Of a stretch of 64,000 nucleotides of DNA, positions 42,601 through 48,600 are shown one piece after another. Source of the stretch: Macrostomum lignano. Its lineage: Eukaryota. Position 1 is the first letter of the stretch. Every line of letters starts with the position of its first letter. The translations under genes were made by a program, and so were the position numbers. The notes under the pieces were generated by a model. It was given only the letters and a program-made list of their open reading frames with translations, ran no database searches and was not told the DNA's origin. The stretch covers positions 1 to 64,000 of the forward strand of contig NIVC01001548.1 of the NCBI GenBank assembly GCA_002269645.1, in the 5' to 3' direction.

Positions 42601-45600
42601 CTCATCCTCGGTATTCCGCGGGCGCTCCTCAGCTGCCTCCCCGTCTCCTTCCAGCCTCTCCCCGCTCTTCCTTATCCGTCTCTGCCGGGCCTTCATCTCC
42701 CGGTGAGAGATATGGAGGGGTGGCTAAGTAGGTTAGTCTGGGAGTCGGCTGGAGTGCGCCGTCCTTTTCCCAGACCAGTCTCTTCCTGGCAGACCCCCAG
42801 GCATTTCCTGGCCCGGCCTTCGCCTTATCGCCTTCTTCCTGTTCTATGGCCTCCTGCTGTACCTCCGCAGTCTTCCTCTTGCAGTTTGGGGACTGGGGAA
42901 TTGGCAGAATGTTGGTTGGGCGGCAAAGACTAGATAGTTAGGGAGGAAAAAGTGAAATATCAAGTCAGAAAATAGACCAAGCTTTGGCTTATTTAGCACG
43001 CCTGATTGTGCGAATGTCAAACTGCAACTGGCGACAGTTTTTAAATACCACTTCTAATGCCTTCTTTGTCACGCGCTTGGTTCTCAAGTACGGCCAAACT
43101 GCTCAGGAATTCGGGTGGTGGGGGGGAGTGCATCGTTTTCTAGCGCGTTTTAGTTGAAAACTATTTGATACCTCATATTGAAAGATAATCCCGCGTTGCA
43201 CCAAACTACTGACAACTAAGTAGTGCTGTTTGCTTTCGTGTGTCCTGTTTTATTATTTAGCCTGTCTGTGCCTCAGTCTCTTATTTTAGCATTTTGCTAG
43301 TAGTTGTACCTGCAATGTTTTGTCTGTTACAATATTCTGCTGTACCCAATTTTGATGACGTAAGCTCCGCTACAAACAAAATTAATGATGCAATAAAAAA
43401 ACATAAATGCAGCCGGAGAATCTGCTGCTCGCCAGCAAAACAAAGGGCGCGGTGGTTAAGCTGGCCGACTTTGGCCTGGCCATCGAGCTGCAGCCCGACC
43501 AGTCCTCGGCGTGGTTCGGTGCGTTTCGCGTGCCCCCCCCCCCGAGTCGCGAAAATTTTGCTTCATTTTTAAAAATTCCTCTTCAATATACTTGTAATTG
43601 TGTTTCTCTCGGTTTGCTGGCTATCTGTGTTCTTGGCTGTCACTTGCCATGCATATGATTTGGGCTGCTTTGCTCGATAAACTCGCTGGTTAGACTCGAT
43701 CTGGAATTCTCAGAGCGTCTCAGAGAACCGAGAATCTGGGACTCCTTTCTGACTCTGGCAAGCGTTTTTATCGGTTTATCTGCTCTCAGGTGCAATTCCC
43801 CTGCTGTAGCTGCTCCCAGGTGCAATTCCCCTGCTGTAGCTGCTCCCAGGTGCAATTCCCCTGCTGTAGCTGCTCCCAGATGCAATTCCCCTGCTGTAGC
43901 TGCTCCCAGGTGCAATTCCCCTGCTGTAGCTGCTCCCAGGTGCAATTCCCCTGCTGTAGCTGCTCCCAGGTGCAATTCCCCTGCTGTAGCTGCTCCCAGG
44001 TGCAATTCCCCTGCTGTAGCTGCTCCCAGGTGCAATTCCCCTGCTGTAGCTGCTTCCAGATGCAATTCCCCTGCTGTAGCTGCTCCCAGGTGCAATTCCC
44101 CTGCTGTAGTAGCTCCCAGGTGCAATTCCCCTGCTGTAGCTGCTCCCAGATGCAATTCCCCTGCTGTAGTTGCTCTCAGGTGCAATTCCCCTGCTGTAGC
44201 TGCTCCCAGATGCAATTCCCCTGCTGTAGCTGCTCCCAGATGCAATTCCCCTGCTGTAGTAGCTCTCAGGTGCAATTCCCCTGCTGAAGCTGCTCCCAGG
44301 TGCAATTCCCCTGCTGAAGCTGCTCCCAGGTGCAATTCCCCTGCTGTTGGCTGTCAGAATTTTTATTATTCCTATCAGATTTTACTGCCACTGATTTAGT
44401 CAGCCTAACTTTATTATCGATTGTCACGCACTAATCCGTTTGTTTCCCTCGGTGTGTTTGCTTGCATTTTTCTCTAACAATTATGCAAAATATTTATTAA
44501 TATTCGATTTCATAATAACATATTATGAGTTTAATTTGGGTTAATCGGCCTACTGCCCTCTCGCTAACTGATTGACTGCCCCCCTGCCGCTTACCGCAAT
44601 AAATTTCCTGTTATGTTTGTTCGCTTTTTATCAATAAAAACAATCAAGTAACAGTCCTTTACGCGTGAGCTTTCCCAATGTCTATTCAATGATTATCAAT
44701 ATTGATGAGGCCGAGGGCTGTTATCAATTTCCTTTTGTGCAGTAATTTGATTTGATTTTGAGCGCTAAACATTGCGAAGCTCAATTGTAGGTTTGTATGA
44801 CAGGCCAGGCTGGGGATGTTGCAATAAGGAGCTTCGATTAGATAATTAGCACACAATGCTGCATTTGCGTTGATTCCATAATTTTTTTCAACTGTCGCGT
44901 TTGAATAAGGGAATTTTTTCAGTATTTATTTCATTTTTCCAGCTTCCAACAAGCGTACAGCTTTCACTGCAGAGGGGGAGAATTTCGCTTGAAACTTTTG
45001 TCTGCATTTAATTGAGCGGTAATAGTGTCATGACTGCGTCACCAGTGTGTCATGACTGCGTCACCAGTGTGTCATGACTGCGTCACCAGTGTGTCATGAC
45101 TGCGTCACCAGTGTGTCATGATTGTGTCACCTGCGTGTCATGACTGCGTCACCTGTGTGTCATGACTGCGTCACCAGTGTGTCATGACTGTGTCACCTGT
45201 GTGTCATGACTGCGTCACCTGTGTGTCATGACTGCGTCACCAGTGTGTCATGACTGCGTCACCAGTGTGTCATGACTGTGTCACCTGTGTGTCATGACTG
45301 CGTCACCAGTGTGTCATGACTGTCACCAGTGTGTCATGACTGTGTCACCAGTGTGTCATGACTGTGTCACCAGTGTGTCATGACTGCGTCACCAGTGTGT
45401 CATGACTGTGTCACCAGTGTGTCATGACTGTGTCACCAGTGTGTCATGACTGCGTCACCAGTGTGTCATGACTGCGTCACCAGTGTGTCATGACTGTCAC
45501 CAGTGTGTCATGACTGTGTCACCAGTGTGTCATGACTGTGTCACCAGTGTGTCATGACTGCGTCACCAGTGTGTCATGATTGTGTCACCTGCGTGTCATG

Positions 45601-48600
45601 ACTGCGTCACCTGTGTGTCATGACTGCGTCACCAGTGTGTCATGACTGTGTCACCTGTGTGTCATGACTGCGTCACCTGTGTGTCATGACTGCGTCACCA
45701 GTGTGTCATGACTGTGTCACCAGTGTGTCATGACTGCGTCACCAGTGTGTCATGACTGTGTCACCTGTGTGTCATGACTGTGTCACCTGTGTGTCATGAC
45801 TGTGTCACCAGTGTGTCATGACTGCGTCACCAGTGTGTCATGACTGTGTCACCTGCGTGTCATGACTGCGTCACCAGTGTGTCATGACTGTGTCACCAGT
45901 GTGTCATGACTGTCACCTGTGTGTCATGACTGTGTCACCTGTGTGTCATGACTGTCACCTGTGTGTCATGACCGTGTCACCAGTGTGTCATGACTGTGTC
46001 ACCAGTGTGTCATGACTGTGTCACCAGTGTGTCATGACTGTGTCACCAGTGTGTCATGACTGCGTCACCAGTGTGTCATGACTGCGTCACCAGTGTGTCA
46101 TGACTGCGTCACCAGTGTGTCATGATTGTGTCACCTGCGTGTCATGACTGCGTCACCTGTGTGTCATGACTGCGTCACCAGTGTGTCATGACTGTGTCAC
46201 CTGTGTGTCATGACTGCGTCACCTGTGTGTCATGACTGCGTCACCAGTGTGTCATGACTGTGTCACCAGTGTGTCATGACTGTGTCACCAGTGTGTCATG
46301 ACTGTGTCACCAGTGTGTCATGACTGTGTCACCTGTGTGTCATGACTGTGTCACCAGTGTGTCATGACTGCGTCACCAGTGTGTCATGACTGTGTCACCT
46401 GCGTGTCATGACTGCGTCACCAGTGTGTCATGATTGTGTCACCAGTGTGTCATGACTGTCACCTGTGTGTCATGACTGTGTCACCTGTGTGTCATGACTG
46501 TCACCTGTGTGTCATGACTGTGTCACCAGTGTGTCATGACTGTGTCACCAGTGTGTCATGACTGTGTCACCAGTGTGTCATGACTGTGTCACCAGTGTGT
46601 CATGACTGCGTCACCAGTGTGTCATGACTGCGTCACCAGTGTGTCATGACTGCGTCACCAGTGTGTCATGATTGTGTCACCTGCGTGTCATGACTGCGTC
46701 ACCTGTGTGTCATGACTGCGTCACCAGTGTGTCATGACTGTGTCACCTGTGTGTCATGACTGCGTCACCTGTGTGTCATGACTGCGTCACCAGTGTGTCA
46801 TGACTGTGTCACCAGTGTGTCATGACTGTGTCACCAGTGTGTCATGACTGTGTCACCAGTGTGTCATGACTGCGTCACCAGTGTGTCATGACTGTGTCAC
46901 CTGTGTGTCATGACTGTGTCACCTGTGTGTCATGACTGTGTCACCAGTGTGTCATGACTGCGTCACCAGTGTGTCATGACTGTGTCACCTGCGTGTCATG
47001 ACTGCGTCACCAGTGTGTCATGACTGCGTCACCAGTGTGTCATGACTGTGTCACCTGTGTGTCATGACTGTCACCTGTGTGTCATGACTGTGTCACCAGT
47101 GTGTCATGACTGTGTCACCAGTGTGTCATGACTGTGTCACCAGTGTGTCATGACTGTGTCACCAGTGTGTCATGACTGTGTCACCAGTGTGTCATGACTG
47201 CGTCACCAGTGTGTCATGACTGTCACCTGTGTGTCATGACTGTGTCACCAGTGTGTCATGACTGTGTCACCAGTGTGTCATGACTGTGTCACCAGTGTGT
47301 CATGACTGTGTCACCAGTGTGTCGTGACTGTGTCACCAGTGTGTCGTGACTGCGTCACCAGTGTGTCATGACTGCGTCACCAGTGTGTCATGACTGTGTC
47401 ACCTGTGTGTCATGACTGTGTCACCAGTGTGTCATGACTGTGTCACCAGTTTTATGAGTATATATAGAAGAAAGAACAGCTCATTTGCGGACACAATTGT
47501 TAAAGAAAAATTTTCCACCTGAGGTTTCCGCCCGCAGGAAGCCCAGAGATTTACATTCCTACCGCACTCCTCTCTCCGCCTCTCCCCCACTCTCTATCGC
47601 TGCCGCTCCCTCCAGCCGGAGAACCTGCTGCTCGCCAGCAAAGCCAAAGGCGCCGCCGTCAAGCTGGCCGATTTCGGCCTGGCCATTGAGGTGCAGGGCG
47701 AGCAGGCCGCCTGGTTTGGTACGTTCCGTGCGCGCGTGGCCTCGGCGTGGCGTCGCGGGCGCCTCCAGCTACTTTGAGTCGCGCCTTCCCGCCAGAATTT
47801 TAGTTGCTGCCAGAGCAGCACTCATGATGCACGAATCTGTTCTGAAGTTTTTAGCAATACGCCTGGTGCCTACTCTTATCAGTTAGCCTTCTAAACACTT
47901 CTTTTACCTTGCTATTGTTCCATTTTTATTCCACATTTCTATCCATCTCGATTGCACCAGTTCCTTCATCATGGCAATTTGTTAATTGAGGTCTGTTGAT
48001 AGGGCTGGAAATAACCATTGAAGGACCTGGGGGAGAGGGTAGCTGTCTACTGAAGGACCGGGGGAGAGGGCAGCGGGCTACTGAAGGACCGGGGGAGAGC
48101 GCAGCGGGCTACTGAAGGACCGGGGGGAGAGGGTAGCGGGCTACTGAAGGACCGGGGGAGAGCGCAGCGGGCTACTGAAGGACCGGGGGAGAGGGTAGCG
48201 GGCTACTGAAGGACCGGGGGAGAGGGTAGCGGGCTACTGAAGGACCGGGGGAGAGGGTAGCGGGCTACTGAAGGACCGGGGGAGACGGTAGCTGTCTACT
48301 GAAGGACCGGGGGGACGGTAGCTGTCTACTGAAGGACCGGGGAGAGAGGGTAGCGGGCTACTGAAGGACCGGGGGGAGAGGGTAGCGGCCTACTGAAGGA
48401 CCGGGGGGAGAGGGTAGCGGGCTACTGAAGGACCGGGGAGAGAGGGTAGCGGCCTACTGAAGGACCGGGGAGAGAGGGTAGCGGCCTACTGAAGGACCGG
48501 GTGGAGAGAGGGTAGCGGCCTACTGAAGGACCGGGTGGAGAGAGGGTAGCGGCCTACTGAAGGACCGGGTGGAGAGAGGGTAGCTGTCTACTGAAGGACC

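Follow-up and report, generated by a model that had tools for sequence, protein, structure and literature searches.

We analysed a 64-kb stretch of the Macrostomum lignano contig NIVC01001548.1, hereafter the window, which holds on its plus strand a gene for the protein kinase CaMKII. With human CaMKII alpha as the tblastn query, the gene was traced from its start codon at 27632 to about the stop codon at 60870. Exon 6 of this gene, which codes for the catalytic-loop Asn (PEN), beta7-beta8, DFG and the first half of the activation loop, as far as W-F-(G), is present in two homologous copies, 6a and 6b. Here, we describe this pair, its counterpart in a paralogous CaMKII gene and the probable use of the two copies as alternatives in splicing.

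Structure of the CaMKII gene and the exon 6a/6b pair

The kinase and regulatory part of the gene consists of exons 1 (27632-27684), 2 (34004-34158), 3 (37306-37360), 4 (37441-37506), 5 (38595-38667), 6a (43413-43518) or 6b (47616-47718), 7 (49535-49618), 8 (49716-49810), 9 (50418-50540), 10 (50619-50702) and 11 (51947-51989), with which it ends. Linker and hub exons follow at about 56.8-60.9 kb, to about 60.87 kb, and tblastn placed the hub exons at 59.1-60.9 kb. In the refined exon model, AG/GT is found at all boundaries through exon 11 and the product has an open frame. The upstream donor common to 6a and 6b (GTGAGT) belongs to exon 5, which ends in phase 0, and their common downstream acceptor to exon 7, which is entered in phase 1.

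The product is a complete CaMKII. Pfam Pkinase is recorded on it, it matches the CaMKII structures 8uso, 2wel, 2bdw and 3soa with E-values down to 6e-178, and its regulatory segment, with an RQET autophosphorylation site and a calmodulin-binding stretch, aligns residue for residue with the solved CaMKII chains. The hub domain CaMKII_AD (PF08332) is recorded on two deposited proteins of the gene, P0121 (PAA70243.1, BOX15_Mlig005291g1) and P0242. Spliced translation showed that HRDLKPEN, DFG and GTPGYLSPE are retained whichever exon is spliced in, and the catalytic residues are intact in both the 6a and the 6b version.

Two further observations concern the ends of the coding region. In the linker region (about 51990-59120), P0121 and P0242, which come from near-identical gene copies, differ by NFS-MNKSSSASK versus NFS-TSSASK and by a 31-residue insert, and from these protein differences the classical linker splicing of CaMKII seems to occur in the M. 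lignano gene too. At the 5′ end, an acceptor-like ttttcag site (27611-27631) precedes the CaMKII ATG by 15 nt; before it come short upstream ATGs whose frames stop immediately. This site could be an acceptor for spliced-leader trans-splicing, which is common in M. lignano (PMC5730564).

An initial annotation of this DNA, made from the letters alone, had proposed two homologous exons of 106 and 103 nt about 4.1 kb apart, and this was borne out: exon 6a comprises 106 nt, exon 6b 103 nt, and the intron between them (43519-47615) 4,097 nt. The four splice junctions it had listed for the pair likewise agree with our exon model. Exon 6a is bounded by cAG on the 5′ side and GTGCGT on the 3′ side and codes for 35 residues; exon 6b is bounded by cAG and GTACGT and codes for 34. 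The polypyrimidine tract of 6b is strong and that at the 6a acceptor is poor. In tblastn with human CaMKII alpha, both copies fell on residues 134-172, between exons 5 and 7, with E = 2e-11 for 6a and 1e-15 for 6b, and a sensitive tblastn scan found exactly two copies of the exon in the window. The two share 81% protein identity, with no other exon between them; their nucleotide similarity extends from the acceptor exactly to a few bases beyond the donor, and the flanks are unalignable.

The reading frame couples the two exons. Both are entered in phase 0 and left in phase 1, and because both are 3n+1 long, transcripts with both or with neither hit an early stop. Spliced translation gave an open kinase frame with 6a alone or 6b alone, a stop within 6b at translation position 193 when both were joined, and a stop in exon 7 at translation position 147 when both were left out. 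The initial annotation had deduced the frame shift from the exon lengths.

The intron between 6a and 6b contains about 3 kb of minisatellite, at 43780-44347 (30 nt x 19) and 45025-47450 (22 nt x 111). The introns of the gene are largely of this kind, with further arrays at 39364-41136 (23 nt x 77) and 48019-48823 (32 nt x 25) and minisatellite-type stretches at about 50.7-51.8, 52.2-52.9, 55.4-56.7 and 57.7-58.4 kb.

Gene copies, deposited models and conservation of the pair

A full-length protein search placed M. lignano proteins at the top of the matches. P0121 contains 6a, and its 90% cluster holds two further GenBank proteins, P0241 and P0242, each with 6a; the cluster look-up for P0121 returned GenBank/UniProt members only and no independent transcript contigs. 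Aside from linker exons that had been left out of the query, P0121 and P0242 equal the spliced translation residue for residue; the GenBank proteins identical to the CaMKII product of the window are PAA70243.1 and PAA66584.1. The locus that encodes P0242 (L007, on NIVC01001548.1) shows no difference from the window in 6a, 6b or the flanking sequence sampled and has the same spacing of 4,097 nt. Two further, near-identical copies, L006 and L008, have 6a-6b spacings of 4,355 and 4,428 nt, and the distance varies among the three because their minisatellite arrays differ in length.

The existence of three copies is explained by the genome of this animal: in the M. lignano assembly, non-repetitive blocks with an identity of 95% or more add up to 180 Mb (PMC5730564), and the species is described as a hidden polyploid (PMC10468722). 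Exons 6a and 6b are free of any difference across L006, L007 and L008. Because the non-repeat intron flanks of these copies are themselves about 99.5% identical, their identical exons say little on selection.

A second M. lignano CaMKII gene, represented by the proteins P0123 and P0124, has about 88% protein identity to the window gene and itself occurs in two near-identical copies, L001 and L002. P0123 carries IELQPDLANDWF, the 6a-type sequence with the extra residue, and P0124 is of the 6b type, so that both exon choices of the paralogue are represented among transcript-derived models. Both loci hold 6a and 6b between exons 5 and 7 in the same order, about 1.8 kb apart, with lengths of 106 and 103 nt and AG/GT boundaries. 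Judged from this shared layout, which both paralogue loci carry, the exon pair is older than the split of the two CaMKII genes.

The Mlig_3_7 GenBank annotation is not ab initio: it was built from StringTie/TACO assemblies of RNA sequencing reads and a mapped de novo transcriptome, with open reading frames called by TransDecoder (PMC5730564), and the deposited proteins therefore reflect assembled transcripts. Exactly one of the two exons is present in 5/5 GenBank models, namely 6a in four (P0121, P0241, P0242 and P0123) and 6b in one (P0124). For the window gene, all three deposited models (P0121, P0241 and P0242) contain 6a.

To assess selection, we compared the window gene with its paralogue by Nei-Gojobori counts of the proportions of differing synonymous (pS) and non-synonymous (pN) sites. 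Synonymous sites are near saturation in the constitutive kinase and regulatory exons (257 codons, pS 0.648, pN 0.020). Exon 6b gave pS 0.471 and pN 0.013, with 12 synonymous and 1 non-synonymous codon differences, and exon 6a gave pS 0.867 and pN 0.098, with 16 synonymous and 6 non-synonymous codon differences. The initial annotation had remarked that 6a keeps an open frame despite many synonymous changes. In the comparison with the paralogue, 30/105 nucleotides but only 6/35 residues of 6a changed, and length, frame and splice sites were kept, while nothing in the intron sequence could be aligned between the paralogues beyond the exons. When 30 random substitutions were placed on 6a, the mean number of residue changes was 18.4 and the minimum 11 in 20,000 trials, so that the observed 6 has P < 1/20,000; 44% of the trials were free of stop codons.

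Both exons are thus under strong purifying selection between the paralogues. Exon 6b is constrained as much as the constitutive exons, which argues that it is still used in the window gene, and 6a is clearly constrained although its protein sequence changes at about five times the rate of the remaining kinase. A dead pseudo-exon is therefore excluded for 6a by this pattern.

In a set of 120 sequences that contains about 115 non-Macrostomum protostome CaMKIIs, including many computed isoforms per species (X1-X35), the exon 6 product of the latter is nearly invariant and always 34 residues long, and most of them read IEVQG[DE]QQAWF. Exon 6b departs from this consensus at one position and represents the ancestral form, in line with its initial description as canonical. 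The 6a copies of both M. lignano genes have in common Ala to Thr in SKAKG (SKTKG), Val to Leu after AIE (IEL), Gly to Pro and Glu to Asp (QPD), and one added residue before Trp. In an alignment to the solved CaMKII chains, the Pro takes the place of the Gly in EVQGDQ, directly followed by the insertion. The Ser-Ser pair in the 6a of the window gene, which had been considered a possible new phosphosite, aligns with LAND in the 6a of the paralogue, and a conserved new site is unlikely.

The 6a signature (SKTKG, IELQPD and the longer loop) was found in none of the about 115 other protostome CaMKIIs, and no 6a-type sequence was present among 120 short fragments. Protein searches with a 119-residue segment, with the full-length product and with a 53-residue two-variant profile, which returned matches close to the query length, found no 6a-type sequence outside M. 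lignano; other Macrostomum species were seemingly not in the collection, so this is no proof of absence. Only one such exon, 103 nt long and bounded like 6b, is present in Schistosoma mattheei, with no second copy between exons 5 and 7 of that locus. One exon, with IEVQPDQTAWFG (P0307, locus L009; ENA ERZ27272051 contig; GCA_041447055.1), on contigs shorter than 2 kb, has Pro at the loop position of 6a and the normal length. AlphaFold models of P0121 (6a) and the paralogue's P0124 (6b) had a mean predicted local distance difference test score of 48 and 52, with values of about 25-30 in the C-lobe and the activation loop, and were unusable.

Splicing of the two exons and alternative explanations

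Taken together, 6a and 6b arose by tandem duplication and are probably mutually exclusive exons that give rise to two isoforms of the CaMKII catalytic domain. The ancestral 103-nt exon was duplicated in tandem, after which the downstream copy, 6b, kept the near-invariant protostome sequence, and the upstream copy, 6a, diverged to a new and then conserved form with SKTKG, IEL, QPD and a loop longer by one residue. One copy would enter each mRNA, and the isoforms would have the regulatory segment, linker and hub in common. Given that the hub exons are all shared and located downstream, co-assembly through the hub is a reasonable inference, and the two isoforms would presumably mix in one dodecameric holoenzyme. 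Exon choice may also be regulated or tissue-specific, and the kinase properties of the isoforms may differ.

The simplest mechanism would be that 6a and 6b compete, with frame incompatibility removing the products of double inclusion and double skipping; the wrong products would not encode a kinase and would probably be subject to nonsense-mediated decay. Two other mechanisms of exclusivity were rejected. Steric hindrance needs an intron of under about 60 nt, and the intron between the two exons comprises 4,097 nt in the window gene and about 1.8 kb in the paralogue. Incompatibility between U2 and U12 splice sites was ruled out by the donors GTGAGT, GTGCGT and GTACGT and by acceptors that are all AG, which are U2-type; the consensus of U12 donors is RTATCCTT. 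Conserved intronic docking/selector pairing was not detectable between the paralogous genes, which have diverged too far for a short element to be excluded. Inverted repeats in the introns of the paralogue are short, AT-rich and unremarkable, and Rfam recorded no RNA family in the window.

Several points weigh against mutually exclusive use in the window gene. The introns yielded no element that would regulate the choice of exon, and the transcript evidence is second-hand, via deposited gene models. None of the deposited models of the window gene uses 6b, and its use there, unlike in the paralogue, is suggested by the conservation of its sequence. In addition, because the copies of the paralogue are almost identical, reads mapping to both could have affected the choice of isoform retained at each copy. 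The mutually exclusive reading of the initial annotation is supported by the frame logic, the models with either exon, the pair in the paralogue and the purifying selection on both exons.

In an alternative explanation, the window gene became fixed on 6a after the duplication, so that its 6b is an unspliced young or slowly decaying relic and switching, if any, occurs only in the paralogue. All three deposited models of the window gene use 6a, and no protein search returned a 6b-containing product of it. However, 6b keeps its AG acceptor, GTACGT donor, polypyrimidine tract, length of 103 nt and open frame, and an unused exon would not stay as clean as 12 synonymous versus 1 non-synonymous differences. 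Moreover, the annotation pipeline ran TACO with --isoform-frac 0.75, which discards isoforms below 0.75 of the major one, reduced alternative transcripts and removed redundancy (PMC5730564); because of this setting and the removal of redundancy, a minor 6b isoform would go undeposited. We therefore regard fixation on 6a as unlikely.

The inclusion of both exons in frame, which would give a kinase with a duplicated beta7-DFG segment, is very improbable. It is suggested by the paralogue models P0125 and P0243 (UniProt A0A1I8GVS1 and A0A1I8GSY4), in which LANDWF is joined in frame to 6b and the beta7-DFG segment is duplicated; the double join uses an AG 4 nt inside the 6b of the paralogue, between CCAG and AGAAT (L001 8722-10709). 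The 6b of the window gene starts with CCGGAG and has no AG there, and joining gives a stop; moreover, it is unlikely that a kinase core containing two DFG segments would fold. Both models originate from an older assembly that was annotated differently. They are absent from the transcript-based GenBank set and are probably predictor or annotation artefacts.

The explanation of 6a as a non-functional pseudo-exon or an artefact of annotation or assembly, which the initial annotation had kept in view and to which the departure of 6a from a segment otherwise almost invariant in animals and its poor polypyrimidine tract would point, is effectively refuted: 6a belongs to the protein deposited for this locus and to those of two near-identical copies, is intact in five loci on five contigs, is used in four transcript-derived protein models, and has a conserved length and frame and a ratio of residue to nucleotide changes that was unmatched in 20,000 simulations.

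The remaining features of the window lie upstream of the CaMKII gene, on the minus strand. A largely intact coding region of a long terminal repeat (LTR)-type retrotransposon at 23376-27070 comprises a gag-like open reading frame with DUF7041 (26165-27070), an aspartyl protease and reverse transcriptase (24786-26141) and an integrase (23376-24722), and ends about 560 bp 5′ of the CaMKII start codon. A DEAD-box helicase gene at 7501-10535 has its DEAD domain in two pieces (10026-10535 and 7501-8127), between which lies roughly 2 kb of minisatellite that is strongly strand-skewed (GC skew 0.90 at 8-10 kb) and open as a reading frame; a DEAD-box helicase also neighbours the CaMKII copy in L008. 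At 3002-3571, an open reading frame of 189 residues, rich in Ala, Glu and Arg and with a CxxC motif (DDTVCKFCGVSYLIHSEMKALEARMQQALAELEHYRG), had no Pfam match and may represent one exon of a coiled-coil gene that has not been annotated.

Relation to other spliced kinases and significance

A literature search found no description of a catalytic-domain exon pair in the CaMKII of any species. As far as we found, it is implicit in public gene models but undescribed. The known isoform diversity of CaMKII, in vertebrate CAMK2A/B/G/D as well as in the Drosophila gene, stems from splicing of the linker that joins the regulatory segment to the hub. As in this classical form, one gene of M. lignano would give several co-assembling subunits with shared kinase, regulatory and hub modules, but unlike it, the M. 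lignano gene varies the catalytic core itself.

Mutually exclusive exons inside kinase domains are established for JNK1/JNK2 (MAPK8/MAPK9), with exons 6a/6b, and for p38 alpha (MAPK14), which also has a pair, and the isoforms from these exon pairs are reported to differ in substrate interaction. The CaMKII pair resembles them in that tandem exons of equal phase lie in the kinase catalytic domain and one would be used per mRNA. It differs in the segment exchanged, which comprises subdomains IX-X of the C-lobe in JNK and p38 alpha and the catalytic-loop Asn, DFG and the activation loop in CaMKII. Furthermore, the JNK and p38 alpha pairs are ancient and vertebrate-wide, whereas the CaMKII pair was seen in Macrostomum only among the sequences compared, and in contrast to those kinases CaMKII is oligomeric, so that isoforms can mix in one holoenzyme.

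In Dscam, clusters of mutually exclusive exons arose through tandem exon duplication. Mutually exclusive exons from tandem duplication are also known in muscle myosin heavy chain genes (PMC3912159). As in both of these systems, tandem exon duplication in CaMKII conserved length and phase and would swap a functional segment of a conserved domain. Unlike in Dscam and myosin, only two variants are present, docking/selector pairing was not detectable, and exclusivity would be explained by frame incompatibility.

CaMKII ranks among the most highly conserved signalling enzymes in the nervous systems of animals, and the 34 residues of this exon hardly vary among molluscs, arthropods, annelids and other protostomes. 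A selected, divergent second version in two paralogous genes would mean that splicing is able to diversify the catalytic core, and the pair offers a natural experiment on the contribution of the activation-loop tip in a kinase that needs no activation-loop phosphorylation. For annotators, 6a and 6b should be treated as alternatives, given that the UniProt models with both exons are probably wrong. M. lignano is a laboratory model in which transgenesis is available (PMC5730564), so both expression and function can be tested for each isoform.

Beyond this, we tentatively propose that Macrostomum may possess a second, splice-selectable CaMKII core, the loop of which, with Gly replaced by Pro and one residue added, could alter the choice of substrate, as the initial annotation had also supposed, or the rate of inter-subunit autophosphorylation of the Thr286 type, and that dodecamers might be tuned by the ratio of the two subunits. 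If true, tuning by the 6a:6b subunit ratio would represent a way of regulating CaMKII that is known from no other animal.

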